Assembly (NCBI GenBank): GCA_964234715.1
Contig: OZ174281.1
Origin: Podarcis melisellensis
Taxonomy: Eukaryota
Length of the DNA: 64,000 bases
Direction: 5' to 3' (one strand)
Part shown: positions 27 through 61,949 of the stretch, piece after piece
Layout: every line of letters starts with the position of its first letter
How positions within the stretch are numbered: the first letter of the stretch is position 1
Notes under the pieces: generated by a model
The model's database searches: none
What the model was told of the DNA's origin: nothing
Seen by the model: the letters and a program-made list of their open reading frames with translations, nothing else
Translations under genes and position numbers: made by a program

Positions 27-252
27 TTTTATTCTCAGGACGTCCACATGGAGTTGCAGTACAATGACAGTTAGAAAAAAGGACCAGTGAGTACTATCAA
101 CTTTTCCCCATAATAATGCACGCCATTTGTCTGAGAATAAAGCATCTAAGGGGGAAGTATGTCTAGTTATTCTTTTCTGTGAATTGCCAGGTTGGGCAGG
201 GCATGAAAGAGTTCACAGACTCATCAGGATTTTTGTTCCTCTGGATTTAAAG
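27..252 (+). pseudogene. Pseudo-exons 27-86 and 191-252
   Basis: ctgcag|...CCA|gtgagt then ttgccag|...AAG|gt. Phases join to give VLFSGRPHGVAVQ*QLEKRT-SWAGHERVHRLIRIFVPLDLK. Confidence 0.6.
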
Positions 253-949
253 GTTTTGTGACAATTAGCTCAGGATGGATAATTGTGTTGATTTTGTTTT
301 GTCTCAGGTTCTAATTTTCCCAGTCTTAGGTTTGGTTCTCCACATTTCTGCACCAGTCCTCCTGAAGATATATTAGCATTTTAGTACAAATTTCTCCTAT
401 TATCACGGCTGGCTCACTCATGAGGTGAGGTAAGGCAGTGGCCTCAGGCTCCAGGCAGCAGGGTGGGGGGGAGCTTCTGAGAAGTGTGCTGCTTACTACC
501 TCCTGTGTTTGTCAACCTCCTCTGTATATCCTGCATGCCCTGATGGGCAGAATGGCATTTTCTATATTGCTTCTAGTGGCAAAATGTCCTGGGGCTGCCT
601 ACCAATAATGCATGTCTTTGTATGCAATATTGCCGGATATACCGATTTTTGCAAGCCATATCCTCTAATAAAATCTATTTAAGATTCTGTTTTCTCTTAT
701 CGATCACCTTTATGCACACTTTACCCTAATATGCACATTATTTGATTGGAAAACTACATAGCAAAATTCAGAGAAGTGTGAGTTTTGAAAGTTTGCATAT
801 TGTTACAGAAGGTGTAAATTTCTTCTCCATCTATCCATGGATAATCTCAAATAACACCCTGGAGGAGATAGATAGTTTGGGGTTACCTCATTCATAAACC
901 AGGAAGCCACAACTAACATGCAAAGCTCCACAGCCCTAAATGCAGTTTA

Positions 950-1208
950 CCGTATTTTGCACTCTATAAGACACACCGGACCACATGACACACCTAGTTT
1001 TTGGAGGAGGAAAACAAGGAAAAAAATATTCTGAATCCCAGAAGCCAGAACAGCAAGAGGGATTGCTGTGCAGCGAAAGCAGCGATCCCTCTTGCTGTTT
1101 TGGCTTCTGGGATAGCTGCACAGCCTGCATTCGCTCCATAAGACGCACACACATTTCCCCTTACTTTTTAGGAGGGAAAAAGTGAGTCTTATAGAGCAAA
1201 AAATATGG
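950..1208. mobile_element. pogo/Tigger-type MITE
   Basis: TA flanks; TIRs ccgtattttgcactctataagac / gtcttatagagcaaaaaatatgg; internal palindrome. Confidence 0.8.
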
Positions 1209-1315
1209 TACCTTCTTTTGAAGTAAGGTAATCTGGGAACAATGTATTGGTTAGAAAAGGCCCAGAGATATCCAGATATGCGATGGAAGAAACAAAAGTA
1301 TTTCTTTTCTTGCAG

Positions 1316-2021
1316 GATGTCATTCTAATGTGAAGTCTTGTGATGTTCAATGCAGCCTTTCATAGAGCAGTGGATCCTTACAGAGCCATTATAACAGTCT
1401 GTTTATTTACCTGCGCTGAGAATGGATGAATGGGAAACAGGAAGTGACACCTGTGGCACCAGAAGGCAGAAACATTGCAGGTCCCAGAATAAAAGCAAAA
1501 TCAAGGCAAAGCACTGAAGCAGACTTTGATTACAACTGCTCTCATGAACAGCTCAGAATTCCTCCAGTCCCACGCAGACAACTGCAGATTGCATAGAATT
1601 ATTCCCCTTCTGATTAAGCTCATGAGGATAAGTTGATGGAGTACATATTCCATTAATTGTCCAGTTCTTTAATATGAATTGCTTCAGTAAAGCCCCCCGG
1701 AAGAAGAACTAGTTTTCTCTCTCTAACATCTCCCCACTTCAGTCACACAATGCATTCTGTTGATTAAGTTTTGAAGAACGTTGGCATCCATGTTTTAGGG
1801 TGTTGATCTCAAGCATTCCTAACCTTCCCTTAGCAAATTCAAAGAAGGTTGGGTTACATGGAGCTCAGGACACAAATTCTCCTCTGCCCTTGTGCTTGCA
1901 GAACGCTTAGCTTTTGTACAAGGGAGGCAGCATCTTCTTAGCTTCTCTGAAGTGATACTTGTAGACAAAACAGACCCATGCCCCACAGCTTCAAGGACAC
2001 TAGAACCAGATTACTCAGAAG
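1316..2021 (+). pseudogene. Pseudo-exons 1316-1627 and 1902-2021
   Basis: ttcttgcag acceptor, 312-bp phase 1-1 exon with stops and donor mutated to ataagt. Then a fully open 120-bp phase 1-1 exon: ERLAFVQGRQHLLSFSEVILVDKTDPCPTASRTLEPDYSE. Confidence 0.6.
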
Positions 2022-3056
2022 GTTGTTGTTGTTTTCTACAAGCCACCACCTTCCAGGAAACACTGACCTAATAACATAAAACCCAGTCAAACCATATCCA
2101 ATATACATTAATTAAAATGACTATTTGAAATTTATGGTGCCTGATTTTTCTGTCTTCTTCTTACCCAAGGCAAATAAAATATATTTAAATTTTGCCAGAA
2201 TATTGTCGGGGAAGGACCTGATCTGCCCCAGGAGGAGAAATTTCAGAGATAGGATGCTGTAGGAGAAAAAGCCCCCTTTTGTGTTTTCACCATCCATGCC
2301 ATCCATGGTGGCAGTGCTATGAGAAGAGCTTCTCCCTCTTAACCCATTACCCAATCTTAGCAGGGCTCCACTTCAACAGATGTCACTCCCCACCCCCTAC
2401 TAAAAAAGAGCTCATCCCCCCACTATGCAAATAAGTGCAGCTGCATTCACTTCCTCTGGTTAAGGAATTAAATAGCACGGTGCAGGCTCACTCTTTCCCC
2501 CAAGGATTAAATTACACCCAAGTCAGGAAATGCAACATTAAATTCACGGCAGCACTGATAGCTTGACTACATGGTACTTCTGCTAAATTTAAGATTTTGC
2601 TTGGTGTAGGTGGTTTTGTAAAAGCTAAGGGTTACTCCTACTATAGTTTTATTACACTGTAGCAACATGAAATATGTGTCTTGTTTTAATATTGCATCAC
2701 AATACAATGCAACAGACAATAAAATGTAATGTAACATAAAATGCAACTAAGTAATTGCCATTTTTGCTGCTTTGGCTAGGCATTTAATGACTTAAACTAT
2801 GCTGTTTTTCCTAGGAATATTTAACACACTTTAAGTAGTGGGGCTGGGGAGTAAAGATTGAAATCCCTATATATGACTTGCACATATTCAGCTTCAAGGT
2901 CTACCGCAGTGGCCCTTCTGCCCATTATGGCATAGCTCCTCTTTGCCAGCACCATCCATTTTCAGAGTTAGTTGATTACCTACATGCCCCTTAACAGAGT
3001 CCAACTTCTATGGCTATCAACCAACACTTTTCCCATGGTCTGATAACTGATGACTG

Positions 3057-4388: not shown

Positions 4389-5647
4389 GTCAATATGACG
4401 GGGAACTGGATTACATATAAAGAACTGATTACAAAAGAAGGAGGAAAATGGAAAATGAAACCCTATGAAGAAGTGAAAGAGTATGTGTATGATTGGTTGC
4501 ATTATTACCAGGCAGTAGCGTAGCGTGGGTTGTCAGCACCCGGGGCAAGGCAAGTAATTTGCACCCCCTAACCCGTGGATTTGCGCCCCCTAACCCTAAT
4601 CCCCAGATGTTGCGCCCGGTGTTGCCGGCCCCCCCTGCACCCCCCACGCTACGCCACTGTTACCAGGTTAATGAAATGTTTAAAAAGGACCTAAAAAAAG
4701 AGGTTATGAGGAAAAAGAATCTAAATTTCAAACAGAAATAATAAGCAATGAGAATAAAATTTTGTCCAAGATGTATAAAATTTTGCTAGAATGGTATACA
4801 AAAGATGAGGAAGTTAAATCGGTTATGATACACTGGGCCAGAGATTTGGGTTATAATATACAGTTTAAGGATTGGATAAAACTGTGGAATGAAAATATAA
4901 AATTTACAGCATGTACGGCGTTAAAGGAAAATGTTATGAAAATGATTTATAGATGGTACATCACACCCGTAAAATTGGCAAAAATGTATAAAACATGTAA
5001 TAAGTGTTGGAAATGTAAAGAAAAAGAAGGAACATTTTATCATATGTGGTGGGATTGTAAGAAGGTGAAGGGCTTCTGGGAAATGATATACAATGAGATG
5101 AAAAAGATGTTGAAATATACGTTTGTTAAGAAACCAGAGGCTTTTCTTTTAGGTATACTAGGAAATGAAATAAATAGAAAGGATTGTAAACTTTTTCAAC
5201 AGCAGTAACAGCAGCGAGAATACTACTGGCCCAAAAATGGAAACAGGAACAATTGCCGACGCTCGAAGAATGGAGAATGAAATTGATGGATTATGCAGAA
5301 CTGGATAAACTAACAGGAAAAATCAGATATATACGAGATCCGAAGTTCATCGAAGACTGGGGAAAATTTACAGATTATCTGAAATGTTTATGTGATGAGC
5401 AAATAACGCTAGTGGGATTTCAAGAAGCTCTGTGAATGTTAGAGGACTATTGTATTGATGAAAACTAAGAGGTGAAGGTTTATAAAATTCAATATAAAAT
5501 TAGGAAATTCGTTTTTAAAAATTTGAATAATGGATGATTGTCAGAGAGGTTGAAGGAAGTAAAAAAGGGAAAATATGTGACAAATTTAGATTGGATATTA
5601 TAAATGTATGTTGGAAAATTTAATAATATTTTTTTTTTAAAAAAAGG
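4389..5647 (+). mobile_element. L1-clade LINE 3' fragment (ORF2 C-terminus, 3'UTR, polyA)
   Basis: KFTACTALKENVMKMIYRWY..CWKC..EGTFYHMWWDC Cys-rich C-terminus; A-tail; 14-bp TSD atgtcccacttttc (4375-4388 / 5648-5661). Confidence 0.9.
4513..4659. mobile_element. hAT MITE inside L1 ORF2
   Basis: TIRs cagtagcgtagcgtggg / cccacgctacgccactg; perfect 8-bp TSD ttaccagg (4505-4512 / 4660-4667). Confidence 0.9.
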
Positions 5648-9918: not shown

Positions 9919-11327
9919 ATAAGTCTACTTGCTCAGATCTCCTGAGCTGGATTAGGGCATCTATTTGTTTCTTATGTTTTGATGAGGGTGGGGGGAGGCC
10001 TTCCGTTTAATGAGATGCAGTGACATTTTATGGAAATGACATGGGCTGAGATCCAAACAGATCTGACTTCCATATGCACACGAGGACTTTTCCTGCCCCT
10101 TCTTGCGACCTTTTGCTACTACCAGAAAACCTTAAATGAATGATATTAATGACTTTTATTTTATTTTAACTTATATTATTTATATCCCACCTCTCAGAAT
10201 ACAAACCCTACCAAAATGGAACTTTCTGAAATGCCAAGCAATGCAAGGGAAACAGCATCTTCCCGTGCTTCGTCTGTTAAATGTGCAGATTCCAGTGCAG
10301 GTGTTGCCAAATATGGCTATATTGCAGAGGGTTGGACTAGATGACCCTTGTGGTCCCATCCAACTCTACAATTCTATGATTCTATGTGATGGAGCAAGAG
10401 ACTGGGGTCACATCCACACCATACTCTAATGCACATTTATACCATTTTAACAGTTGTGGCTTCCCTATGCAACAAACTGTTTCCAAAAGTTTAAAGGGTT
10501 TCTATGAAATTCAAACAAAAATTAGAAAGGCTGATTGCTTCCTGTACTGTAACATATTCTAAAACATGGTCAAATTTAGTATAAGCAATATTTTTAGATG
10601 TTCATGGGATGGCATCCAGAAAAATAAATGGAAAATATTAATAAATATACAGTCATCAGGACCTTGGTTATGTTTCCTCTCTAGAACCCATTTCCATTCA
10701 TCTCTCATTGCAAAATTGCTTCTGCTAGAAATGAATGCCAGCTATAGATATATAAGCAATAATAATCATATTTCACAGTCATAATGTGCGCAAGTCCCCA
10801 TTTGGGGGAATAGGGGGCAATTGTTATAGCTCAGTGCATTCTGGGGAAATTATATTTAAATTCATGATGTAAAACTTCATCAGGGAACACATGTCAGTCC
10901 ATTATACTCCAAGGCATGCAAATTTAAATTCAGAACAGAATTCCATCTCAAATATTTAGCAAGAGCCTTAAGGTACAATAAATGAATGAGCTGGGAGTGG
11001 GGGAGTCAAAGTCTAGTAGATAAATAATAATAATTTTTTGACCAGTATTTTCTGCCATCATCAAAAATTTTAGCTGAGAAATGGATTCCATGCATTTATA
11101 CCCAATTAAATTAAAAGGAAAACAATTAAAATCACAATTTGCCTGCTGCTCTTGAGGCAACTATTCCGACGATAAGTGCATATTTTAAAGCAATATCAGT
11201 TTTTAGACTTCATGTAAGCTTAACTTATTCCAAGACAAACCAAACCAAAACCCTACAGCCAGGTTTGCCCTGATTTTTGCTAGTGGAAAAGATGCCAATT
11301 TTAAGTCAGCTCTTGAAAATTTTCCAG

Positions 11328-40716: not shown

Positions 40717-41474
40717 CATCAATCCCTTTATTATGCCAACCAAGATGTCACAAAGATAGTGTACAAGAGCTTAGACTAAAATTGTCTGGAGCAATACAGC
40801 ACATACAGCATGTTTAGCTACATAGCAAGTCTTGTGGTCTCACTAATTTATTTGATTTGCTGGTTTTACTAATATTTCGTAATATTTTGTGCTGTATGTA
40901 TGTATTGTAATTATACAAAATATAGCTTGAGGACTGAGAAGAAAGTGAATTTGACAGAACATCCCTTCCTTGATGCGGACATTAGAGAAATATTTGAAAG
41001 TAAGTATCATGCTAAATTGCATATTTTTCTTTCTCCGCTGTGAGCTTTCTAGTGTCATCCTATGATTTTCATCACAGAGACTGTTTCCTGAAGTCTTATA
41101 TATTGCATCCATTTACAGTATAACACAGAGCAATTCATGCCTGTCAAATACATATATTCTGGTGCTAATCATTCCATATTGGTTTTGCCTTTAAGCAGCT
41201 GTTTTGCCTACTTGGGTCTGTAAACTGTTCCTTGTTCTTATCACTCAGTTCTCAGCATCCCCAAATGCTTGTGACACTTGGACAACCTGTGTTCAACCAG
41301 AAATAATGTGAACCAATATGGCCCTATTGTCCTCATGCCCCCCCCTTTTTTAGCTTAGACCTTTCTCAGGATGTGTTACAGTGCTACAATCAAGTGGAAT
41401 TATTATTTACCTCTTATTCATGGTTTTGGAATTTTGTGTTAGCATCTGTCCATTTCTCAATCTCTTCTACAAAG

Positions 41475-42561
41475 CAGATTTCAGACCCAGAAAAAAAAGG
41501 ACAATATTCTGGAGGAGGAACCCGTTTTGGAAGAAACAGTGTTGGTGTTGTAGACTAAAGATGATGGCTCAACTGCAGCTGTTACTGTCTGAAGAAAATT
41601 ATGGGAATGGGAAGTCTCCAAAGCTTCCAGGTGAAGGTCAATAGGCAAGGGTGGGAATATACAATAGGCCAAAGCAAGGCCTACTTTCGATGTAGCAGTG
41701 CAAACTCAGACTGAGGAAAAGAAGATGCCATCTGTAATGGTTCATGTCAACAAAAACAACAGGGGAAAGAGATAAAGCACAGTATGTGACAGTGACTTCG
41801 GAATGGAAGAGGAGCGGTTCCCAAGATGACCGTACAGGTACAACAACGACAAAATATGCCATCAGTAACAGTCAAGGTGCAACAAGAGTGGAACAAAATT
41901 GGAGAGGTATCATGTGTGTCTGTAAAATTTCAACCCACGTGTACAGCGGAATGGTCATGAAGGAGAAATTCTTTGTGAGGGAGGATGCCCATTGGCAACG
42001 CAATAAGAGGTACAAGGATGCACCTCATGAAAAACAAGACCAGCAGCAAACCCAGTGTAAGAATGGGAAAATAATGGAAGAGGAGCAGGAGCAACAAGAT
42101 CGGGAAGAGACAAATCTGTTGGATTCAAAGTCTCTATGGAAGAACATGAATCAATCACTGGGGAATGAGAACTTGCAACAGCAACTTAAGTGGAACCAGA
42201 GCAGCACAGAGCAGCTAAAGGCCAAAGACCTGCTACAAAGAGAGCAAAAAGAAAGATTAGAGGTGATGGTGATGGAGAAGAAATTGCATGATGACAGCCA
42301 ACATGCAGAACTAACAAATATGCTAAAACTTCAATCTTGTAGTATGAGAGAGGAAGACACACAAGACCCAACCACAGAGAAGCAGCAGGAACATGAAAAT
42401 GAAGATGACATTTTCTCTCATCGGCAGCAACATGGTTCAGATGAAGGAACCCAAAAGACGAAGGTAGAAGAGAAGGAACAGGAACACAAAGAAAAAAATG
42501 TATCTAAGAAACACAGAAGGGATATGCCTATTTTGTTGCAACTCCAATAGCAAATGACCAG
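41475..42561 (+). pseudogene. Large Q/E/K-rich pseudo-exon (contains the 268-aa track ORF 41744-42550)
   Basis: Purine-rich coding-like composition with frames shifting between stop-containing segments; ends CAG|gtaagg at 42561. The 5' boundary is approximate. Confidence 0.65.
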
Positions 42562-43800: not shown

Positions 43801-45457
43801 GAATTCAAGCCTGCAGCACTAATAATAAAAAAAGGTTATGGAATATAAGCACACAATTGTACACCAGGCCACTTGAATGCCCTTGAACAGCATGTCTATA
43901 TGTTTAACTTTTTTTTGTTGAAGTATAGAAAATATTATAGTCAGGTTTTGGTGCCCCAGAAACATAAGAGCATTTTCAAGTGAACAAAACTGAACCACAC
44001 CAATTAGAATTGCAGCATAACTTCTTTTCAGAGCATGTTTAAGCTTCTGGCCATTGGGACTTCCCTCTCCTGGTTAAATTCATTCATCTTAATCCTAAGA
44101 ATGCTACTGAAGGTTCTTTCAAAAAGCATAATATTTTTTCCTGCAGCTTTTCAGCTACACAGATGAAACAGACTTGGAAAATGCTGAGAACGGGCCGTGC
44201 AGCTCAGCAAAAACAATGTCTTTAAAAGTGGCAAATTTAGTCATCTGAACGGATTTATTTGCCATCACAGTTTCCCACTTGGGAAAACGCATCGGTTTCT
44301 TCATGTAATCAGAAAGTAGCACACACGTAGCCCACAATTAATTATGGAAATGCTATTCCATTTTCCAGTCTGTTAACAATTGGCAGCTGCATAAGACCAC
44401 ACCAATACTTAGTTCTCTTAGTTTTGTGCCCTCAGTGAAGCTGAGGTTCAGAAATAGCACAATCAGTCTCTGCTTCCTCAGAATATACTCTATATATTTA
44501 AAATTTAAGGAAAGATCTTATTGAAATTCTGGGATGCAGGCAAAGTTGAAGATGCATTCTGCATTCTGTCAAGTAGATACAACTCAACTGGAAGTCTGAA
44601 GTTGCACATAAGAATTATGTATCAATAATGTGTTTCTTAGGGATGGTAAATCTGGAATCCCTCCCCTCCCAAAGAACTTTATTTTTAGAGCCTAAAAAAG
44701 TTCCTTATCTCAGTCTGTTTTCATGAACCCCAAAATGAGTTCAGTTTGATGTTAAAAATTGCTTTTGGTTTAAGAGAGATAACTTCAAATCACTGCCTAG
44801 CACCTGGAGAATGACTGAACACATCTTGAACAGGGACACTTCCCAAGTGTCTTAAGAAGCTAAATAAATTATCTCTGGGTCTAGGGTTAAAACGTTAACA
44901 AAGTGGGTGCATTATTTTTGATAAACCTCCTTTTTATCATTAGATTTGAGATAAAATTGAAGATGTCCAAGAGTTGATATTCACCAAAGAGCCTGACCTC
45001 TTGAGAGCCCCAATTCCAGATCAAACGGTGCATTTATGATTACTGTAGCTCATCTGAGGACAGAATATGATGTGAGAAGGCAAGGAAACTTAAAACAGGG
45101 AGAGGAAATAACTTAAAATGTTGCTTTGCAATTAAATGAATGGTTTTTATTCTTAACACATTTTGTGTTGGATACCATGGTCAGCGTGGGATCAAATGCC
45201 ACTGTGAGGGTTGGGCTACCCCTGTCCGTTTCCCAGCTTGGGTCAGCCAAGGTAGTAAGTTTATCCAGCGAACTAGGTTCATCTGTGTAAGATTTTCTGC
45301 TTGCACAGTGGAACCCTCCCTCTCCCTGTGCACACACCTCCCCTTCCCCAAATCTACTACAGAATAGATTTAGGGGGTGCCGGGGAGAAGGAAAGGAAGA
45401 GAATTTCTGCTGTATGAGTGGAAATCCTTCCACTGACTGAATGTGTGAACTGTCCAT

Positions 45458-47373: not shown

Positions 47374-48107
47374 GTGAATTATGTCAATTTCCCCTTCCGG
47401 CATCATGTCCTCTGAAAAACTGCTCCACAACATTATGGGATCCTCTGTTGCGGTGGAGGTGGTGTTGGGTATGTGTGCAGAGGAAATGGATGAGAATTGC
47501 TTCCTACCTTCCTCCAGTGGGAACCTCTGCTGGATCCTATTGTGGTCAGGGAAAAGCTTATCTAGATCTATCCCATTTTGTTCTTTTATGCTGACCTTGT
47601 GCTTTTGCAATTAATATTTTGCATCTATGCAAGCAGACGTTCCAAAAAGCCATCCTGACCTTAGTATTTATTTCCAAAGCTGCTTGGCTGGTGATTTCCT
47701 ACTTAGGAGTGTGTTTCTTTCTTTTAAAGGGCTGTTTCTGCTCTGGAGCACAGCAAGGCCAAAGTGCAAGCTTTGTTGCAGGGAAAACTCTTCAGCGTGG
47801 CATTTCATGGGATTGGCCAGTTTAACAACCAAGTGATCTATATTAAAATGTCAGAGGATGAACAGCAAATGCTAAGCAGAATTGTGGGTTAGTATTTAAG
47901 CATTCACAATTTGCATGAGATTACTATTTCAGTGAAACACTGAAATAGCATATCAACGTTGAACACAATTATGGATGTTGATTACTTGAGTGTAAAAAGT
48001 AGATTTCTCCTGCTTCGTTAAATTTCTGTTAACATATATTAAAATAGACCCTGCTTTTCTTGGGCATCCAGGTTTCTCCACTGTTGCCATTGTGTTTCAA
48101 ATTCCCT

Positions 48108-49122
48108 TCAAAAGGCGGAGATTACAAAGCTAGCCATACACAGATTCTTCTTCACAAAGGGCAGCAAATATGTTCCGGCAGCCTTAAGGGTTTTCAATGC
48201 AAAGCTTGTTTCCCAACTCCTGTATGCAGCAAATGTCTGGCATAATGGGGACCTGCCAAGGCTAGATGGCTTTCAGGCAAAATTTCTATGATCTCTGCTG
48301 CAGGTACCCAACTGTGTCCCCAACTCCGTACTTCTGTTAGAAGCTGGTGAATGCCCAATTTCAACTAAAGCGTGGTGGGCTGCCCTAAACCATTGGCTCG
48401 GGATTTCAGTGTTTAATCTAGGGAAGGGTTTGTACCAACACCTGACCAATGAGGAATTTGTCAGCAAATGGCAGAAAATCATGGCTAAAAAAGCCACCTC
48501 TATTGGTCTGTCTCCCCCCCCCCCACTGTATTACCTTGGTTATGAAGGCGCCCAAAAGATTTAAAAGCAAAGATTATGGGATAATGCACACAGTGACTTG
48601 CGATCTCGATCACACGCAGTCTGTAGTCCGCTGGCAGTAGGAGTTCAATATGGGTATGTCTTTAAGTTAACATCTTACATTAAAAACCTGACAGTACCAA
48701 ACTACCGAAGGCTTTTCACCAAAGCCGGACTAAATGTCTTTCCCTCTGCAGTGTTGGATGGCAGGTTGAGAGGAGTTCCCTACCAGGACAGACTTTGCTC
48801 GTGTGCTCAAGACATCGATTCCATAAAACATATTTTGTTGCATTGTGCAAAATATGAGCAGGCCAGGGCTGAATTGATACTACCCTTGCTGGTACCTTTC
48901 CTGGGCAAATCAGAGGCTCACTATGTCAGGTTCCTACTGGAAGACCGGACAAATGCTAGAACGTTAGCAGTGGCAAAGTTTTTATCAGTGGTTGCAAGAA
49001 CAAATGAGCCCTATATTTTAAACAAAATGCTTGTTTAATCTGGAGGTAGGCTGTATGAATTGTGTATTGATTTGTAATGATTTGTTGGGTTTCTGGCCGT
49101 AATAAAGATTGATTGATTATTA
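48108..49122 (+). mobile_element. Non-LTR retrotransposon 3' fragment (RTE-X-like)
   Basis: YRRLFTKAGLNVFPSAVLDGR..VPYQDRLCSC...HILLHCAKY...R C-terminal CCHC-type motif; AATAAA plus (GATT)n tail; 84-bp flanking duplication. Clade assignment tentative. Confidence 0.8.
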
Positions 49123-49439
49123 TTCTGTTAACATATATTAAAATAGACCCTGCTTTTCTTGGGCATCCAGGTTTCTCCACTGTTGCCATTGTGTTTCAGA
49201 TTCCCTCAGAACACTGTAAGCAAGTGTAAACTGATACACAAAACTTCACATATCTACTAAAGGGGTGTGTAACTTACCAGGAATAGACCTTGGGGTTCTA
49301 GTGGACAACTCAGTGAAGATGTCAAGCCAGTGCGTGGCAGCTACTAAAAAAGGTGAATTCCGTGATCATTAGGAAAGGGATTGAAATGCTGATCCATTAA
49401 ATCTACTGCAATGCACTGCACTGCATGTGAGACTTCCCT

Positions 49440-49820
49440 TGAGCTTAACTTGAAGCTGCAGGTGGTGCAGAATGAATGCTGCATCTAGGTTGGTATTCCT
49501 CAGCAGTGGTGTTTTATGCTGTCCACGGGGCACCCCATGGACACCATAGAACACCTCTGCTGGAGGAACTGCACCAGCTGCCAGTATGCTACCAAGTGCA
49601 GTTCAAGGTCTTGCTTTTAGCATTAAAGCTCTAAACAACTTGGGACCAGGATATCAAAGGTACTGTCTTGCCCAGTATACTCCTGCCTGACAATTGTATT
49701 TCTCATTTGGGGTACTACTAGGAGTACCAGATACCCCCAGAGGTGCACTTAACCTATACTAGAAACCAGGCTTTTGGTGTTGCCATTCCAGCTCTCTGGA
49801 ATGAATGACCAGCTGAAGGT
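49440..49820 (+). mobile_element. Old L2 fragment
   Basis: aagctgcaggtggtgcagaat...ctgcaccagctgcc...ttcaaggtc L2 motifs. Confidence 0.55.
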
Positions 49821-50437
49821 AAGACTTCTTTACTTGTGTACTGTGCAGCCTGTAGATATGGCTGATCTTATGGTGCTGTATTATTCATACTAGCTCTTCA
49901 CATTTTGCCTCAATAATTGCTTTAAAATAAAGGTTCCCATGTTTTCCAAGTAAGATTGCCATGGTATGTAAATAGATGAAGAAACTGTACACCATTGGAG
50001 CATATGGTGTGTTTAGTCTGCCTCCCTGTTTTGCTTAGAACTGCTGTGGAGTGCCTGTATCTGAATGTCCTGTAAACAAATGTCTTTTATTTTCATCACT
50101 TGTCTCCTAGAAGCTGTGGCGAGCTCATTCACCAGAATGAATGTAGGCATCAGAGGCAGCAAAGATTTCAGACCCACCTGAGGATTCTGAAACTGTCCAA
50201 ATCACACACATTGAGATGCATGATAATTAAGCAGATGGAATTATCTCCTCTTTGTGCTTTGTTTCCTTGCTCCTTTAGAACATTTAAAAATGTTTTGGAT
50301 CACCATGTTGCATGCAAAACAACGATATATCAAATTGTTAGGAGATTTTATCTTATTCAGGGCATCGTGAACTTCTCTCACATGACTTGACCTCCACCCA
50401 CAAAACAGCAACGCTCCAGTCAAAGGTAAACAGAAAA

Positions 50438-51500
50438 TTAAGACCCAGAAGCCTGGGAGAACAAAAATGTTTTTGCCTGGAGCCTAAAAACAGATAGTGA
50501 TGGTGCCAGATGTTCCTCCCTGGGGAGAGCATTCCATAAATGGGGAGCCCCTCTGAGGAGGCCTGTTCTCCTGTTGCCACCCTCCACACTGCCTGGGGGG
50601 AGGGGCCTGGAGGTCCTCATATGATGAAGGAAGGGTCTAGGTTGGTTCATGTGTGGCGGGGTATTCTTTGAGGTACTGGGGTCCAAGCTGTACAAGGCTT
50701 TATAGGTCAGAGCCAACACTTTGAATTGGGGCCAGGAGCTAATTGGAGCCAATGCAGTCATGCAAGAATTAGTGTGATTGTTCAGACCATCTTGCCCTGG
50801 TCAGCAACTTGGCTGCTGAATTCTGCACCAGCTGCAGATTCTGAGGCACTCCTCAAAAGCAGTCCCACATATAACACATTGCAGTAATCTGACCTAGAGG
50901 TTACCAGAGCCTAGATAACAGAAGTTAGACTATCCCTGTCCAGGTAGAGGCCTTGAAAGACCTACAGTGGCTCCCAGTATGTTTCCGAGCACAATTCAAA
51001 GTGTTGGTGCTGACCTGGAAAGCCCTAAATAGCCTCGGCCCAGTATACCTGAAGGAGCGTCTCCACCCCCATTGTTCAACTCAGACACTGAGGTCCAGTG
51101 CCGAGGGCCTTTTGGCGGTTTCCTCACTGCAAGCAGCGAACTTATAGGGAACCAGGCAGAGGGCCTTTTTGGTAGTGGCGCCCGCCCTGTGGAACACCCT
51201 CCCACCAGATGTCAAAGAAATAGACAACTATCTGATGTTTAGAAGACATCTGAAGGCAGCCCTGTTTAGGGATGTTTTTAATGACTGATGTTTTAATGTA
51301 TTTTTAATCTTTTGTTGGAAGCCGCCCAGGGTGGCTGGGGTATAAAATTATTAATTAATTAATTAATTACTGGGTGACCAGCCAAAACTGATGGAAGGCA
51401 CTTCATGCCCCTGAAGCGACTTGAGCCTCAAGCAACAATAATGGATCCAAAAGTACATCTAAGCTACACACCTGCACCTTCAGAGGAAGTGTAGCCCCAT
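50438..51500 (-). mobile_element. Old L2 fragment (minus strand) interrupted by a younger plus-strand L2
   Basis: QFKVLALTYKALYSL on minus; continues after ~51370. Confidence 0.65.
50953..51369 (+). mobile_element. L2 LINE 3' end
   Basis: KDLQWLPVCFRAQFKVLVLTWKALNSLGPVYLKERL; 3'UTR and (TAAT)n tail. Confidence 0.85.
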
Positions 51501-53138
51501 CTAGGGCATCTGCTACCTCAGCAAACATCATGCTACTCTGTCTGCTAGATAACCAACACCTCCACACATCCTCTCTTGGCTGATTTAATTTAACACTAGC
51601 AGAGGTATCTCTTGAGCTACAACGATCCCGGATGTTGCACTTCTAACATAGATAACACCAACTGAGCATGCCATTTTAAAAATCAATATTTTTGACTTTC
51701 ACGAAAGCACTTCTTCATGTAATTGCTACTACATCAATGTCTGCATTTAAAAGTAAAAATAAACAAAAGGTGTGTTAACCCTTTTTTATATATGAAATTT
51801 GAACATCCATGTTGCTAATGTGGCACTAACTAGAAAGTAATAGCCACAGTGTGTGGAAGTTTGTAAGCCGCTTTGAGATTCATTTGAATGAAAAGTGGTA
51901 TAGACATACAATAAATCTAAATCAAGCCAAGGTGAAGAGTTAGGCTGCTCGGAATGTCACAGCCATGTCAAAACCATGCCTCTTTGAAAAAACATAGAAG
52001 AAGTGGTGCTGAGACAATTTGTGCCTACTGACACTGCAGAACAACAATTTGATGCAGACATAATCATGTAGAGTGAACACAGAATCACAAATGCAGAGAG
52101 TAAAGGCCTAGCATGGAAAGACCCCAGCAGGAAATGAATCTTCCATGTCCCCACCTGCTTCTCAGGCAAAGTGGAGTGAGAGTGAGAAATACAGTAGGGT
52201 ATTATCTCTAGTCAAGAAAAGAACTTTGTATAGGCCATAGGGTAACCATTTCATGTATGTATAAACTGCAGCCTGCAAACTATTTACTCCATAGTAAATC
52301 AGTAGAATTACTTGAGAATAAAGTGATTTGAGATTCAAAACTGCAGTTTTGCTTTTACTGCCTTTGCTTATATCAGTGGCATGGAAATGCAGCCCTGAGC
52401 TGTTTCCACCAAAGGAGCAAAAGAGGTTCTGGGGAATGTTCAGCTGACTGCAGGATTTATGTCAGGTAGCATTCAAGGCTTCTGGGACTTTGCAATATAA
52501 ATACATGATATGCTGATCTAACCTTTAACTGCAGCAGGATATAGGATTTGGTTGGGTTTTATTGCTTTACAATTAAAGTAAAAACGTGGCTCTGATTAGA
52601 TTAAGTTTTCCCTGCTCAAATGCTGTCTTCCTTGTTTCCTGGAATAGCTGTGTGTTTTTATGAGGTCAATATAATAAGCAGAAGGAAACAATAATGATAC
52701 ACTCTCAGGACGTGAAGCGAATGCTTTAATAGTGGAAGAAAGCGTTCCCTGACCATGAGCTTCTGCCAGTCAGGTATGAAGTATTTCTTCAGATATTTGA
52801 TGTCTCTCATTCAGCTTGGAAATAGCAGAGCTTATTTATAAAGATATTTACTCTAAGGCTGAGGGTGACAATATTTCTGTTGTCTAGGGAGAAATGCAGG
52901 AGGATAGGAATGAGTGATGTTGAGCTAATGGTGTATTTTGTTTTGTTTTGTCTTGTAAATCTCCATTAAGTAGATAATGTAGGGCACACAGCTGAAATGC
53001 ACTCAGTAGCAAGGCTGATGGGAAGATAATAAATGCAAACGATACAAAGTGTTCCTCCATTGGAAGAATGACTCTGCAAAAATGTGTTTCTGAACAAAAC
53101 ACTGTCCTGTAAAAGGTAGACCTTATTTCTAGGACCTT

Positions 53139-53420
53139 TAAAGGTAAAGGTAAAGGGACCCCTGATCATTAGGTCCAGTCGTGACCGACTCTGGGGTTGC
53201 GGTGCTCATCTCACTTTATTGGCCGAGGGAGCCGTCGTACAGCTTCCGGGTCATGTGGCCAGCATGACTAAGCCGCTTCTGGAGAACCAGAGCAGCTCAC
53301 GGAAACACCGTTTACCTTCCCGCCGGAGCGGTACCTATTTATCTAGTTGCACTTTGATGTGCTTTCGAACTGCTAGGTTGGCAGGAGCTGAGACCAAGCA
53401 ATGGGAGCTCACCCCGTCGC
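53139..53420 (-). mobile_element. Sauria SINE, 5'-truncated
   Basis: aaaggtaaaggtaaagggacccctg...; homologous to the 6854 and 26617 copies. Confidence 0.9.
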
Positions 53421-54820
53421 AAGTAGAGGCTGGGCCAAATTTTAATCCACTGCCCTGGCAGCCTCTCAAACCTCATCCACTCTGTATCTCAGGGTGGGCC
53501 ATGCCTGGCTTCCGTCCTCCCCCTTTGATGAAGATAATTTCCTCGGATTCCCCTCCTAGTGTTGATATAGTAGCTCTGGGGGCTATTGCAGCACCCTCGC
53601 ATCAAGTCAGTGGCATAAGCCATTTGCTTGCACTATGCTGGGATCCATCCCTCATTCCTATTCTTTGCCTCAGTCTATGTGTTTGAGCTCTTAGCTACGT
53701 TTCTCTGGGATAGAACAAACATGTCGCAGTCTTTGTCTTAGGGTTGCACACAGACACCCTATACAAATGGGCCTGTCTCCATCTCAGCCACATGGGGGGG
53801 GGTGCAGTTAGCATGAACCTTGCTATGGGGGCAGTGTAAGCAAGTCATTCCTCCTGTGCAGGTTTCCCAGTCTAAATCCTCTTCCCCAAAGCTGCTATTT
53901 GCCCAGGAGGGAGAAAACACGGTTGCAAACAACAGCTTTGGAGCTTGAGCTATTTAAATAAACCATGTGGGAAGAAATAGCTGGACCCTCTTTCCTACGC
54001 CACTTCCTCAATCAAATGAGAAGCTCAGAGTGTTTTGTGCTTTGAAAAAAGGGACATAAATATGTCATTCTAAGTGCTGAGCAACCCCATCACATAAATC
54101 TCAGCCCTCTATGGAATTGGAATTGTTCAAATTCTGATTCAGGACTCTCTTATCTAATATAATGAAACACATGTCTTTGTTTGTCTGCCCTTGATTCCCT
54201 TATCCTGCCTTTATTCACGAGGAGTCCTGCTGAGCTTAATAGACACAACATTAAGGAGTGATAATGGCCACCTTAGATGTTGTAATTTTTGATGTGAAAA
54301 AATGAGTTAGAACCATGAGTCGATTTTTGCACTTCTTTCTGCTACATACAAAAATGCTGGGAAGTGCATTTGTCCACAGTCCTGGCACAGGTGTATTGCA
54401 TGTTTACTTGGGAAAGAAAAAGAAAGTCCTAATGATCTGTGTTTTTCCTATACATTTTCTTACATAGAAATGCGCTCTCTCTCTCTTTTTTAAAAAATAG
54501 TTGCAAGTTTTGAGTTACATTCAGGGTTGGTGCTATCATTAGACCGACAAGGAAGCCGTCTAGGGTGCAGACCTCAAAGGGGTGCAATACTGACCTTTGA
54601 GGGGCACAATTTTATAAGGATTAGTTCTGGTTATATAGTTTTGTGTTTTTCATTTTTTTCTACAAAATATCTGCTTTTGAAAATAGAAGCTAACAATTTG
54701 GGGCATGCATGCAAGACATTAGCCTGGCCTAGGTTGCAAAATAGCCACGCCAGCACTGGCCACATTGTCAAAGCAACTTTGTTATATCAGTTGAAGTACT
54801 ACTTAACCTACATTCTTAAG

Positions 54821-54993
54821 CAGTGCTTTCCCCCCAAAAAATTGTTTAGGGGTACTCTCATTTTGACTCAAGAAAATCACCATTTTATAGTGCAAATCAC
54901 GAAAATTAAATACAGTAAATGGACAAAAGTACAAAGATTCACAAAATGTTTAGGGGTATGCATACGCCTGCGTCCCCCCAGAAAAAAGCACTG
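54821..54993. mobile_element. hAT MITE (CAGTGCTTTT family)
   Basis: TIRs; TSD ttcttaag / tccttagg. Confidence 0.8.
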
Positions 54994-56056
54994 TCCTTAG
55001 GAGACCTATGCTCACCAGGGTTGAGAGACACTTTCTTCCTGCAGACTTTTTGCAGCACAATATTGATTCAGTTCATTCTAGGTCAGGTTCGACCAAAATG
55101 TTTGAAGTTAGGTGGTAGATGTGCTAGAGGATGTGTTAAGCGGAGCCTGGATCAGTTTGGCCAGATATGCTGTGGTGCTGCATCAAGCATCATTTTGAAG
55201 TAAATTCCCTGTTTTGATGGATGAAAAATGCACAGGAAAGGGGTACTAGAATGAAATATTTTTGTTCCTTTGCAAAGAAGCTGAATATGAGATAATAAAA
55301 GGGATATGCAGATGACTCTACAGACACAGCATTGTAGTAGCTATTCTGATGCCATCTGCTGGCTGTACTTTCCCACCAGGTTGTACATTACATTTTCCTT
55401 GGTTATTTCTGAGCCTCACTTAAGTACTTGTTTAAATTCAGCAATTATACAGAAATGGTTGGATGTCTGGGGGTGATATCTGTGTTGTGGCATGATTAAC
55501 AAAATCAGTCCTCCTGGCAAACTGGGAATATCACCTCATTCAGCCAAGTTTAGGATATTCTACCATTCTTCAGCAGAGTTTCTTTTTCTTTGAGAAAAGC
55601 AAGTGGTTCACATAAACATAAACAAGTTTTAATAAACTGAGAGAAAACTGTAGCAAAATAACATGATGTCTGAGAGAAACTAAAACAGTACCCTGAGACA
55701 AGTCTGAGGCAAGAAACAAGAAGAGGCAGTTGGAGCAAAATACACAAGCCCCGCCCACCAAATACCAAGCACTCTACTATTCGAATTAGACCCCAGTGTT
55801 TTTCTGACAATCTAATGGTATCATGATATCTGAACCTATTGTCAGTTTAGTTGCATAATATTTTCCCTTCTTCTCCGCATCCCTGCGTAACCCCCCACCC
55901 CCCAAAATCTGTTCCTGGTGGGTTCAAAGGACAACCCCTAGGAGCAGACTTGAGGAGCACATGAGAGCCTGCGAGGCAAGGGGGGAGAAGAGGAAGATGT
56001 CCCATCACATCTGCTGGACATAGCTCTAGGATCTTCTCCCTTTGAAAAAGAAACAC

Positions 56057-56108
<52 letters not shown>
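56057..56108. repeat. (TAA)n microsatellite
   Basis: About 17 units. Confidence 0.95.
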
Positions 56109-56597
56109 TTATACACCACCCATCTGGCTGGTATTCCGTGGTAAGAGTAATCAAGAAGTATAACAGTTAAAGGACTAAATTGTCATCAAAAAAAGATTAA
56201 GGACTCATTTGGCATCTAAAAAAAGATTAGCATTTGATCCCCTCTAAATTATGCACTTCTGCAAGCATTAACTGCGAGCTCTGTAAAAATGTGATCATGT
56301 AATTAAAGATTATAGAAGGCAGGCCAAGTGTGATATCAACGCCTTATTTAGACCCAATGAGCAATTGTGCACTAGTGGCTTGGCTGAATCTTTTTAGTAT
56401 ATGTGCCAATTATGCTTAATAATTTGCCATTTTCTGTCTCTCTCTCACCCCTTTTAGCAATGTACACACTAAATAAATGGAATAAGCTGCATCAGGTAGC
56501 CTTATCTAACAAAGTGATAGGGTTGCTGCTTATTCCAAATATGGGTTTTTAGTGCTATATGAAAACTGCTGAAATTAGAAGGAGGAGGAGGTGGAGG

Positions 56598-56850
56598 AGT
56601 TTGGATTTGATATCCTGCTTTATCACTTCCCGAAGGAGTCTCAAAGCGGCTAACATTCTCCTTTCCCTTCCTCCCCCACAACAAACACTCTATGAGGTGA
56701 GTGGGGCTGAGAGACTTCAAAGAAGTGTGACTAGCCCAGACTTCAGAGAAGTGTGACTAGCCCAGCAGCTGCATGTAGAAGAGTGGAGACACGAACCCTG
56801 TTCACCAGATTACGAGTCTACCGCTCTTAACCACTACACCACACTGGCTC
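56598..56850 (-). mobile_element. tRNA/CORE SINE (Squam3/MIR-like) with internal 26-bp tandem duplication
   Basis: Reverse complement head gagccagtgtggtgtagtggttaagagc; duplicated agacttca(a/g)agaagtgtgactagccc at 56712-56763. Confidence 0.8.
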
Positions 56851-57218
56851 TAATTAGTTAGAATGATAGTCCATGTTGTCTGATAACCTGTTCCCATGGG
56901 GCATTTCTGACCAGTGTAGGGATCCCAATACTGTGTCTATATTTAGGAAGTGGACCGTACAATGAGAAACTGAAGCAGCTCTCACTATGTCACAAAAAAC
57001 CCATGTCATCGTCCATCTTAAAATCTTGGATTTTGCAATTGATTTCTATGGGCAGTGTGAGCTTTCTCTCTTTCTCATATCCCTGGTGAAAATTTAAAAA
57101 ATAGCTGTGTCAGTATGAACCAGGAAGTGACCTTTTGAGACAGCAAGATGGTTCTTTCTACCCTTTATATATGCCTGTGTTTTTCTTTGTTTCAGCCACT
57201 CCATTCTATTCTTCCTCC

Positions 57219-57392
57219 CAGTGCTTTTTTCCCCTTAAAAAAAATGTTTAGGGGTACTCTCATTTTGACTCAAGAAAACTATTTTATATTTCAAATCAGG
57301 CAAAATAAATACAGTAAATGGACAAAAGTACAAAGTTTCACAAAATGCTTAGGGGTACCCCTGTGCGCCCCCCCCCAGGAAAAAAAGCACTG
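57219..57392. mobile_element. hAT MITE (CAGTGCTTTT family)
   Basis: TIRs and homology to the 54821 copy. Confidence 0.8.
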
Positions 57393-57562
57393 CTCCCACT
57401 CATCCAGTTTTCAGCCCCCTTCCCCTTTCTGTCACTCAACATTCATGGCCATGAGGTTATTATGGGGCTGAATCTTGTTTGTATTACATTTTATTACTTG
57501 TAAAACTTTTTACAGATGTGCCTGCCCCTTTCTTTCTCCAAATTCTATATCTCCCTGTACAG

Positions 57563-59550
57563 CTGTAGTAGCAGTTGAAATATTTTCATGGGCAGTTTGT
57601 TGCAGGGACATGTATTTATGCTACAGTGAAGGACTCCATAACCCTCAAGCCCTATTGGAACTGGTTGGGATTCAGTGTGCGTCGTCTCATCCTTGTTGCA
57701 GGATGGGTTGGAAGCTTTTGAAAATTCAAAGTACAATTACCATACTCATATCATATGAAGTTCTCTAGACCTTGTTGTATTTGAGCCCATAATTAAAGAA
57801 CTTGACTAGAGAACAGAAGCGTGAGAGGTGAGAAGTTATTATGCTTTTACAATTAGAAAATGACAAAGATCACTGAACAGGAAGTCTAGACTGCAGTGAC
57901 TCAATGAGAGTGTTTTTTGCATTAATATGTGGCAGAAGAGGATATTTATTAAGAGGTGTTTTACTTTGACATTTCATTTTGCACATTGTGGCTGCTGTAA
58001 TATCCATCTTCCAAATTTACTCTTGGTGTTAATCAGTCATCCAAAAGACGTAACTCTCTCTCTCCCCCCCCCCCCACACTCCACAGAATGAAGCACCTTC
58101 TACAGTACACTCCTGAGTTGTTGGTTCACTTTAATATATGTTCTTCCTGAATAAAGAGGACCATTGCGTGGTGCAAACAGCAAGACAGGATAGTGTGCTT
58201 TAATGTGGAAGAATGCAGTTGTGAAACAAATGAGACTGAACAATGGGGGCGGGGGAGCTCTGAGGAAAAAAGATCTACTGAAAGTGATCCAAGAATATTG
58301 TTGAGAAGTTTTGCAACATAGTTAAGTGCATAAAAAGTTTATAGAGGTAGAATAATGCATTGAGGGTTTTGCACCTGAGAAAGATAAAATAAGTTGTGGA
58401 TTTTCCTTGGATGACAGTTATGTACGTACCTGTTGATTTTTCAATCTCAAATCTAGTTTTTTGATTTCAGGAAAGCCATAAGGTGTCGGGGCTCTACCAA
58501 GTTGTAGCTAGTAAAACTAGGGTCCAAACAATGGAGATATATGTATATATTCTTACTCAAAGGCACTGCTTACAAAAGCAGTATAAATGTTATCAAATCA
58601 TCCTTTTCATGCCCACAGTATCAAATGTGTGCACAGAAAAAGCAAGTCATTCTTCGAAAGTGAAACAACACAACACACAAAGTAAAAAATGTTGATAGCA
58701 AAAATATTGAGATTTTGTTAGCTACTTATTCGCACTATAGGAATGATCAAACATCACTTTTAAAGCATTGTAGTCTTTGGGCAGCTGATTAAAAAAACCA
58801 AAATCTGTTTCTTAAAAAAAAAAGTTTAAAAAACACAGTGTGTAATACACAATGTATTTTCCAATGTTTTAGGGCTTTACAAAAATTCAGGAAGATCTCT
58901 ATAGAAAGTATGAAGACAATCCTTTTGGCACAGAGATCTTAAGGCAAATTGATCTCTGCGCTATGCATGAAAAGAAGCAGATTTCTGGTTATTACCACTG
59001 TGCATCTTCCATCAATGCATGCCGCACAATTCCAGAAGACCATAAGAACAAAGAGCAGCCGGGTGATGCTCCAAAACAGAATATTCTTGGTGTCCATTTA
59101 AAAGGCAGCATGTGTGACAATACAAGAAAAAAGCCCAGAGACGATTATCCTGCTGTTCAGAGGGATTACAAAGTAGCAGGAAATCTTGATGGAGATGCAT
59201 CCATAAGAGAAGAAAATGGTATGACTAAAAAAGACACCGAAACGAGAGCCAATAGTCAAACTTTCTCTGCAGACAGAGAGCTCTGTTCCAAGTCAGTACC
59301 TGAATTATTGCCAGCATTAAAGGCTAAGGATTAGGAACAAGGGAGGGGGGGGGGACACCACACAAAGATGACAGATGATGACTTATGAAAAGTTGTGGCA
59401 AGCGAAAAGGCTCCTCAGCCACAAGCCATTAATGCATCAAGGTACAAAGAGTTCCTCAGCCAGAAGCAGATGCAAAATGCCACTGCTGATGTCAATCAAT
59501 GGAAAAACATTGTGGGCTGTGCAGAATTGCAGCTGGGAAAAACCACAAAG
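57563..59550 (+). pseudogene. Pseudo-exons 57563-57706, 58157-58346, 58471-~58681, 58873-59550
   Basis: L**QLKYFHGQFVAGTCIYATVKDSITLKPYWNWLGFSVRRLILVAGW; ...WKNAVVKQMR...LRKKDLLKVIQEYC*EVLQHS*VHKKFIE; 678-bp phase 0-0 exon GFTKIQEDLYRKYEDNPFGTEILRQIDL...ELQLGKTTK|gttagg in one frame with only two stops (59332, 59386). Confidence 0.75.
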
Positions 59551-60062
59551 GTTAGGGGACGATCAGCTCTTTGCTTTGCTTAAGGAGAAAACAGGAAAGG
59601 ATGTTCAGAGAGTAAACCAGGGTGGGAAACATGTGATTCTCCTGATACTGGTGCTCAAGTCCAGCTCACATAATCTCTGGTGGTTTGGCCATTCCAGATT
59701 GCACTGATGGGAGTTCACCACTGCTTGTCTAAACACATGAGTAATATGCTTATCCACTTGGGGGAATAAACCTTAGAAAACTTGCCATCTTTTGTTTATA
59801 GCATTTTGCTAAAGCACCATTGTTCCTTGACTTTATTTTGAGGTTGAATTAATGGGCATTTGCTTTAAACCCCCCCAAAAAACATTCACTGTTGGGACGA
59901 TCTGGTTTTTAGACTGAAGAAGGATATTCTTTATGTAAAAGTGTCAGTATGGTATTAAAGCAGGGTTATAAAGGCTAAGTCTAAAACAGGAGTAGTAAGT
60001 TGATAATACTAGACGTTAGGTATGAGCTTTACTGAAGCAGCCTTTAGAAAGGAAAACTATGG

Positions 60063-60760
60063 TTGCTTTCTTACCTCTCTTGCCCTGACCTAGCCACTGT
60101 GATCCACACAATGGTCACCTCCAGACTGGATTATTGTAACTCGCTCTACGTGGGGCTGCCCTTGAGACTGACCCAGAAACTCCAGCGGGTGCAGAATGCT
60201 GCAGCGAGACTCCTTACGGGGTCCTCGCTGCAAGAACACATTCATCAGGTGCTATACCAGCTGCACTGGCTCCCGGTCGAGTACAGGATCAGATTTAAGG
60301 TGCTGGTTTTAACCTTTAAAGCCCTATATGGCCTACGATCCTCTTACCTACGGGACCGCCTCTCCTGGTATGTCCCACAGAGGAATTTACGATCTGCAAA
60401 CAAAAACATCTTGGAGGTCCCAGGCCACAGAGAGGTTAGGCTGGCCTCAACCAGAGCCAGGGCTTTTTCGGCTGTGGCTCCGATCTGGTGGAACGCTCTG
60501 CCACAAGAGATTAGGGCCCTGTGGGACTTGACATCTTTCCACAGGGCCTGTAAGACAGAGCTGTTCCGCCAAGCCTTTGGCCAGGGCACAGCCTGACTCC
60601 CTCCTTTGGCAATCTTCACAGAACTCTACCCAATGGTTGCCATCAATTTGATTTGAAGTAATTTTTTAATGAAATGATTTAAAAATGTTGTCTTGTTTTA
60701 TTGTTGTTAGCCGCCCTGAGCCCGGCTTCGGCTGGGGAGGGTGGGTTATAAATAAAAATA

Positions 60761-60810
<50 letters not shown>
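60063..60810 (+). mobile_element. L2 LINE 3' fragment with (TTA)n tail
   Basis: Open 177-aa ORF2 end VTSRLDYCNSLYVGLP..LQRVQNAAARL..LHWLPVEYRIRFKVLVLTFKAL; 3'UTR; TTA tail 60763-60810. Confidence 0.93.
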
Positions 60811-60812
<2 letters not shown>

Positions 60813-61245
60813 TCCTGTAACCTCTATGATCTAAAAGTGTATTCATTTCATTGTTAGTGAGATATGTGGTATTGCTATAATTTGCAATAGCTCTGTGTCA
60901 AGTCATGATGATATGCAAGCAATTCCAGTGATGTGATTTGGCAAAATTACGGTAAGCCACAGGGGCGGGGGAGCGTTCTAACTGAAATGCCTTTGCCAAC
61001 TGTACTGATATAGTTTGACCAGCAGATGGCACAAATTGAAAATGTCTAGCAAAACAGAGTAAAAAGAAATGAAAGAGATTTACAATTTACTGTATTTGAC
61101 AGGCCGAAGGGCCTTTTACTTTAAGTCCCACCAATGCAGAAATATTGAGTACCCATTGCAAGGAATACCTTTCAATAGTAGTTTTACTTCTATCATTATG
61201 AATGGAAAACGCTGGGAATTTGGATGTTTATTTCTAGATTTTTAG

Positions 61246-61949
61246 GGTGGCTTTTTTAGGGCCATGTCAACGGTCAGAAATAGGCCTACATTATTGGCCC
61301 GCGGCTTCCAGACTTTCTGTTTCAAGGAGCACTTTGTCTGTTGTCTGTCACAGAACATTCATGTCTGCTGTTGAACCCTTGTGTGTGGCAGAAGATTCTG
61401 GAGCATTGCCAGGGTGCGCAAGCCTCGCTTCCTGGTCTTCCTCATTGCCTCATCTGAACTGAAAATCCATTATGTAAAAATAGCAAGTTTGCTCCTTGGG
61501 CTATGGATTGTAGGAGAAGATGGGTAGAAAAGTGTTTCCTTTGTTACTTGAAGAATCCTACATAAACTAAGGAACCATCTATTGCTCTGGAGTACAGCTG
61601 ATGAAACTCATTGCCCTCCAACTCCCATTATTCTGGAGCTGATGAGAGATGGAGTCTGGAGGGTGACAGGTCCTCTCCAGAATAACAGCCTGTGGTTTTA
61701 ATGGAATTTTACTCCCAAATTATTGACACGGGCTACTTTTCTAGATATCATACTCATGGAGTTAAAAATTTAAAAGATGCATTAGAAACAATAACAAACA
61801 TTGTCTTCACTAAGCTTTTCAAAAACTAGGTTTATAACATGGTGTTGTATTTTCCCAAGAATCGAGTTCCTTCTGTCCAAAGATATGAGCACACAATAAT
61901 GAGTTCTGCTGTGCAAGTGGGTCTGTGTGCAGCTCTCCACCAAATAGAG
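61246..61949 (+). pseudogene. Pseudo-exons 61246-61473 and 61860-61949
   Basis: 228-bp phase 0-0 exon GGFFRAMSTVRNRPTLLARGFQTFCFKEHF...*TLVCGRRFWSIARVRKPRFLVFLIASSELKIHY|gtaaaa; 90-bp phase 0-0 exon NRVPSVQRYEHTIMSSAVQVGLCAALHQIE|gt. Confidence 0.65.

Follow-up and report, generated by a model that had tools for sequence, protein, structure and literature searches.

The closest described system is AKAP7 (AKAP18 gamma/delta), in which a central 2H phosphoesterase domain binds 5'-AMP and can degrade 2',5'-oligoadenylate (PMC4161237, PMC8406329). The term 'AKAP7-like' was used by Johnson et al. 2012 (PMC3508976) for genes with the NLS/2H Pfam domain of AKAP7 but not its RI/RII Pfam domain; these were reported only from invertebrates, Ciona and algae, and no vertebrate paralogue was described. 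A vertebrate AKAP7 paralogue is also not mentioned in the paper on viral phosphodiesterases (PDEs; PMC10835031). The DNA analysed here, referred to as the window, is a stretch of 64,000 nucleotides (nt) from Podarcis melisellensis with no N letters. Between positions 40926 and 59436 its + strand very probably holds a unitary unprocessed pseudogene, the positional lacertid orthologue of an AKAP7-like gene that is intact elsewhere and is called the long form below. Like other vertebrate unitary pseudogenes it lies at the orthologous locus with its introns, bears nonsense, frameshift and splice lesions, and has shared lesions nested with private ones. A lineage-specific unitary pseudogene is ordinary and nothing unusual in kind, and the loss of this particular gene was not described in the literature searched. 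A 2H phosphoesterase kept by most tetrapods would be a pseudogene in a lacertid lizard, and the nested lesions of such a clean gene loss could be used to date it across Lacertidae.

The gene was recognised from its last exon, where a 153-codon open frame (58873-59331, +) starts at a clean acceptor (ttttag|G) and matches the C-terminal end of the AKAP7 2'5' RNA ligase-like domain (AKAP7_NLS, PF10469) above the gathering score of 24.4. A phmmer search of 1.84 billion representatives with the last exon as query returned 63 hits. The top match was a Podarcis lilfordi open reading frame (ORF) of 123 amino acids (aa) that was 93% identical, and other top matches were proteins of 310-940 aa named 'uncharacterized LOC' or 'AKAP7-like' from Hemicordylus, Rhineura, Sceloporus, Crocodylus, bilby and echidna. 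Thirteen of these orthologues gave colinear tblastn hits to the same six + strand exons, the boundaries of which were refined against the Rhineura gene, while 14 orthologues searched on both strands gave nothing better than E 0.4 outside the six exons. Pfam was also searched with 20 ORFs of at least 90 aa (19 and the last-exon open frame), among which the AKAP7 exon alone gave a match, and the window had no match in Rfam at gathering thresholds.

The six exons run in the order of the intact gene. The most upstream is a probable coding exon (…TEHPFLDADIREIFE; 40926..40999, +) flanked by AG and GTAAGT, which is the weakest of the six; it was matched by tblastn to residues 34-57 of the Crocodylus protein P0006 (62% identity, E 0.005) and residues 37-58 of the Hemicordylus protein P0002, and it falls inside the nucleotide colinearity with Rhineura. 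The large Q-rich exon (41475..42561, +) has its ATG at 41564, corresponding to the Rhineura start, and retains the donor CAG|GTAAGG. With frame changes followed it is 64% identical to the Rhineura protein P0003 at the amino acid level and 80% identical at the nucleotide level to positions 10001-11038 of the Rhineura locus (L002:10001-11038). A protein search with the 268-codon ORF at 41744-42547 found no homologue, a result of little weight as that frame is partly non-ancestral and the search is length-limited. Exon C (44944..45079, +) begins the 2H domain with the first H-x-T motif and is broken three ways, and exon E (50111..50222, +), which was aligned with P. lilfordi and Rhineura, carries the second H-x-T motif. 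Exon D (47730..47887, +) is the only exon free of lesions, with both splice sites kept, junctions as in Rhineura, 83-88% amino acid identity to squamate orthologues and an AKAP7_NLS score of 24.7 bits over profile positions 60-116. The last exon (58873..59436, +, end approximate) encodes the end of the 2H domain and an acidic tail and scores 30-33.6 bits with AKAP7_NLS, the higher value being for a trimmed piece; it is 50% identical to Hemicordylus over 194 aa in an alignment that continues through two stops, and Pfam found PF10469 only and no PF10470 in it. Both exon D and the last exon exceed the gathering score, whereas the pieces of exons C and E, too short to be scored by Pfam alone, align to orthologues. 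A candidate exon 1 at 30830-30856 (LRCLSRESD, 8 of 9 residues as in Hemicordylus residues 8-16) was rejected as chance, having an E of about 9, no start codon and no support from other orthologues.

The proposal of an earlier note, made from the DNA sequence of the window, that an unprocessed, lineage-specific dead gene lies on the + strand was borne out in kind, though not in size, exon count or identity. From 36.6 to 64.0 kb the window follows the intact Rhineura locus colinearly at the nucleotide level, through introns and flanks, at 65-83% identity, and the introns are retained at orthologous positions. In Rhineura the gene is 18.4 kb long, and no other gene lies within 10 kb of it. Because the colinearity is locus-wide, the window holds the positional orthologue of the Rhineura gene at the ancestral locus rather than a copy of it. 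Intact orthologues are Rhineura floridana LOC133370213 (XP_061452150/XP_061452781), Hemicordylus capensis LOC128323107, Pogona vitticeps LOC110079420, Sceloporus undulatus 'AKAP7-like' XP_042298987 and Crocodylus porosus LOC109313944. The window copy shares with these the exon order, the splice positions, the gene span (18.4 kb in Rhineura) and the intron colinearity, and amino acid identities are 64% (Q-rich exon), 83-88% (exon D) and 50-63% (last exon). The intact orthologues have an uninterrupted frame from start to stop and both H-x-T motifs, whereas the window copy has five stops, nine frame-breaking indels and two altered donors.

Lesions were compiled from a frameshift-aware protein-to-DNA alignment, an alignment of the large exon to Rhineura DNA and a junction-by-junction comparison. 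In total there were five in-frame stops and nine frame-breaking indels, together with one donor lost and one changed from GT to GC. In the large exon two TAG stops (41642 and 41665) each replace Gln, and seven indels relative to Rhineura (-1 at 41652, -1 at 41747, -1 at 41764, -11 at 41797, -41 at 41934, +4 at 41972 and -4 at 42527) include none that is a multiple of three. Codon 2 of exon C is TGA instead of the TTA of Rhineura (44947-44949), the Thr codon ACT of its first motif, M-H-L-T, is cut to TG by a 1-nt deletion (45037-45038), and its donor has changed from GTAAGG to GCAAGG (45080-45081). Exon E has lost one C from a CCCC run (50173-50175), its second motif reads H-L-R for H-L-T through a Thr>Arg change (50181-50183), and its donor GT is AT (50223-50224, GTGATT>ATAATT). 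The last exon has a TAG at 59332 and a TGA at 59386 where orthologues stay open, and all the remaining acceptors and donors are conserved. The loss of the H-x-T motifs in the window matters since they are retained in 82 and 72 of 86 intact orthologues, and two intact catalytic H-x-T/S motifs in a single frame are not present in the window copy. By its sequence, the window copy appears to be a relic of the 2H phosphoesterase family, not a working member, and would be unable to give rise to a functional enzyme.

The reality of the lesions was examined using contigs from four runs over 41400-42781 and 43608-45200: X1, the probable source sample; X4, a second sample bearing the species label of the source; and X5 and X6, from two related species. 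A further comparison was made with the P. lilfordi locus (L001), which is about 95% identical to the window (about 5% diverged) and covers window positions 47207-64000. The X1 contigs were identical to the window over both compared stretches, and lesions of the substitution type recurred in the independent P. lilfordi assembly. Together these indicate that the lesions are not assembly errors; stops due to such errors had been named in the earlier note as what would leave the gene intact.

The lesions differ in age. X4, X5 and X6 have an extra A after 41655 and an extra G after 41761, and further extra bases at 41796-41798 (TG plus CAGCAGCAA) are displayed for X4 and X5. With these bases three large-exon frameshifts are undone; the three are therefore confined to the window haplotype. 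With the displayed differences applied, X4 and X5 probably still carry both Gln>stop codons in frame together with the -1 at 41747. Over 43608-45200 the gap totals of X4, X5 and X6 are fully explained by other listed indels, leaving none at 45037, so that the 1-nt deletion in exon C is common to all three. The exon E donor AT and the stops at 59332 and 59386 are common to the window and P. lilfordi. The exon E coding sequence is intact in P. lilfordi, where CCCC and H-L-T are kept, and the exon E deletion and Thr>Arg change are present in the window and absent from P. lilfordi. In the last exon the window and P. lilfordi differ at nine nonsynonymous and two synonymous codons, with no sign of constraint, as expected under relaxed constraint. 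Exon D is identical in the two; this was rejected as evidence of constraint, there being 14 perfect runs of at least 100 nt in 12 kb of the P. lilfordi alignment.

The decay is stepwise and began before these lacertid lineages split. The loss of the exon E donor, the two late stops and the deletion in the first H-x-T motif would be the older lesions, arising before the split from the relatives, while the three large-exon deletions and the second-motif deletion and Thr>Arg change would have arisen later in the window haplotype or lineage. The rest of the span from 27 to 61949 would be intron and intergenic DNA with LINE fragments.

A haplotype mosaic was also observed, in that X4 was about 2% different from the window with 31 gap letters over 41400-42781, while downstream (43608-45200) only two substitutions and one 11-nt indel were present. 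Old haplotypes, introgression, the sample label or repeat instability may be the cause.

Three scenarios had been put forward for a dead gene in this window, and the unitary pseudogene is the best fit, since by position the locus is orthologous to the intact gene of Rhineura and the searches found no protein of its clade in lacertids. Lacertid proteins were absent from the 85 hits of a search with the Rhineura protein (316-1006 aa range) and from the best 120 of 270 hits of a search with the Sceloporus protein (170-542 aa range), and the P. lilfordi annotation at the locus consists of the 123-aa ORF fragment only. We consider it very improbable that the gene is still functional in the species, with the window representing a null haplotype or errors while other alleles or a lesion-skipping transcript work. 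The absence of three large-exon frameshifts from the conspecifically labelled X4 and from the two related species would fit such a reading, but gap accounting places the first-motif frameshift of exon C in X4, X5 and X6 as well, and X4 and X5 probably retain both Gln>stop codons and at least the -1 at 41747. The intact exon E coding sequence of P. lilfordi with its H-L-T is followed by the same GT>AT donor change as in the window. Several of the frameshifts are single-base changes in short runs, yet both donor changes, like three of the five stops, are substitutions and not homopolymer errors. Exon D is intact, which also favours function, and against it no lacertid protein model was found among the hits of either search.

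The other two scenarios, in which an intact partner exists elsewhere in the genome and the window copy is either a dead duplicate or a degenerating W/Z gametolog, are more improbable still. Besides having been raised by the earlier note, they draw on X4, whose 2% divergence across the large exon at first sight hints at two copies. The locus is colinear with a single Rhineura gene in its flanks and introns and is thus the ancestral locus, and a ZW pair or a recent duplicate less than 10% diverged would give a second contig in X1. Instead X1 had one contig per single-copy place, identical to the window and without alternative letters, and over the compared stretches its contigs showed no further copy of at least 90% likeness. 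The failure of both protein searches to return an intact lacertid protein and the position of the P. lilfordi locus on an 89.6-Mb chromosome record likewise tell against an intact partner. Neither scenario is supported. Several points nevertheless weigh against a unitary pseudogene: exon D carries no damage and has 88% identity to a cordylid protein, X1 is possibly not independent of the window assembly, and four more gap letters in X5 and X6 may repair one large-exon frameshift. The dating of lesions through P. lilfordi is confined to the window downstream of 47207, the case against a second copy comes from protein databases and from contigs of at least 90% likeness, and the evidence for a dead gene is at the DNA level.

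The size and nature of the gene proposed earlier, one dead gene that spans 27-61949 (over 60 kb) with over 30 exons and encodes a giant unrecognised protein, have next to no probability. The gene occupies about 18.5 kb (40926-59436), six coding exons were mapped, and the family is a recognised one, with the AKAP7 2H phosphoesterase domain (PF10469) and named intact orthologues in many reptiles. The ten peptides quoted as + strand exons are all present (9122-61443), and one of these, IQEDLYRKYEDNPFGTEILRQIDL (IQEDLY…QIDL, 58885-58956, +), is a real coding sequence that belongs to the gene and matches PF10469. It is the only true exon among the ten, and the gene to which it belongs encodes about 575-600 aa, with an orthologue span of 18.4 kb. 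The nine others would be chance open frames. They lie within stop-to-stop stretches of only 19-54 codons, and none of the + strand matches to 14 orthologous proteins (E <= 20) coincides with them. One of the ten peptides thus hits a protein, and for the other nine the family of that protein gave no colinear + strand homologue. At E <= 1, Pfam matched none of the seven open stretches that hold eight of the nine; the 19-codon stretch with HRLSFLDWGWQVYGLLG is too short for a Pfam search and stands outside that count. Ten further + strand ORFs of at least 90 aa were also without a Pfam match.

Individual peptides were disrupted as well. The dots in 'QDVKRML..WKKAFPDHELLP' conceal two consecutive stops (TAATAG, 52727-52732), 'LKPYWNWLG...' is disrupted by a 17-nt indel in P. 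lilfordi, a relative only 5% diverged, and two of the nine (at about 52.7 kb) sit in a conserved non-coding intronic block in which every indel relative to Rhineura is a non-multiple of three. The polypyrimidine tract before AG scored 0.73 at the genuine exon compared to 0.33-0.67 at the other peptides. Relative to dinucleotide shuffles of the window there was an excess of open stretches of at least 40 codons (386 on the + strand and 414 on the - strand, shuffles 333 +/- 13) and of open segments bounded by polypyrimidine-AG and GTRA (165 and 169, shuffles 119 +/- 13), which taken with the existence of the peptides is what a giant gene has in its favour. The excess is alike on both strands and is therefore no mark of a + strand exon chain, and the chaining of AG/GT-bounded exons was not confirmed. 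With this false lead removed there is no cryptic giant gene in the window, and short AG..GT-bounded open frames in vertebrate non-coding DNA need a strand control before exons are called.

The long form looks like an old unnamed paralogue of AKAP7. A maximum likelihood tree of the 2H domain from 34 database proteins resolved two clades with starred support. The first, AKAP7 proper, consisted of eutherians and Trichosurus, while the second, the long form, included sawfish, coelacanth, amphibians, monotremes, marsupials, turtles, crocodilians, birds and squamates with branching that follows the species tree. Intact long forms were present in the searches in squamates, turtles, crocodilians, birds, monotremes, marsupials, amphibians and sharks, and both AKAP7 and the long form are present in marsupials and cartilaginous fish. 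A eutherian long form was not found among the 85 hits of the Rhineura search or the best 120 of 270 hits of the Sceloporus search. The tree contained database proteins only, and the proteins nearest to the window exons are squamate long forms in the clade apart from AKAP7; exon D is 38% identical to dog and possum AKAP7, in contrast to 83-88% to squamate long forms.

The long form resembles AKAP7 in having PF10469, in the two H-x-T motifs of intact relatives and in the position of the domain after a basic stretch. It differs in a long Q-rich N-terminal repeat region with repeats of the 'VTVQVQQ' type and in being without the RI/RII-binding domain PF10470, which in precomputed domain assignments is present in human, gorilla, Petaurus and Callorhinchus AKAP7 and in no long-form orthologue. 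The clade thus fits the operational definition of 'AKAP7-like' (PMC3508976) but is vertebrate. Its database names are haphazard and include zinc finger 853-like, involucrin-like, frizzled-8 and formin BNR1 (proteins P0002-P0138).

Motif conservation suggests that the long form could be enzymatically active. We tentatively propose an old gnathostome paralogue that never had or has lost the PKA-binding helix, retains the catalytic 2H motifs in groups ranging from sharks to birds and marsupials, does not appear among the eutherian hits and decayed independently in lacertids, and that might act as a 2',5'-phosphodiesterase trimming 2-5A; as a whole this is a doubtful proposal. If it holds, repeated loss would be a sign that the OAS-RNase L arm of innate immunity was rewired in particular lineages, and the long form would be a second candidate cellular source for viral PDEs. 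A second unnamed vertebrate gene of the AKAP7 family without the PKA-binding domain is relevant to cellular 2',5'-phosphodiesterases and to the origin of viral PDEs.

Elsewhere in the window, C-terminal fragments of LINE ORF2 were present at 4714-5294, 13059-13785 and 62205-62619 and were 69-84% alike; a 238-aa ORF of these fragments was placed at 0.98 with atlas clusters carrying zf-RVT (PF13966). The intron at 42543-43812 contains very high-copy repeats, with a summed k-mer depth of up to about 34,000 compared to about 35 for single-copy sequence in all four runs. Five stretches (48108-49122, 51094-51502, 56643-57420, 60073-60804 and 62203-62959) were absent from the aligned P. lilfordi locus, one of which has a 177-aa ORF (60063-60596) and one a LINE ORF2 3' fragment, and a SINE-like copy at L001:9376-9618 in P. 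lilfordi was missing at the matching place in the window. From the alignment, these presence differences would be insertions or deletions after the split.

Two non-exonic blocks were also conserved. The intronic block at 52397-53092 is 82% identical to Rhineura, contains 386 nt (52595-52980) that are 100% identical to P. lilfordi, and is conserved as much as the exons of its dead host gene. A missed exon was considered and rejected here, since all seven indels relative to Rhineura are non-multiples of three and there is no codon periodicity, which marks the block as non-coding. It is a candidate conserved non-coding element, either an enhancer or another kind. Upstream of the gene, the block at 39654-40396 is 84% identical to Rhineura (L002:4941-5690) with mostly non-triplet indels and is possibly an old promoter, 5'UTR region or regulatory element.

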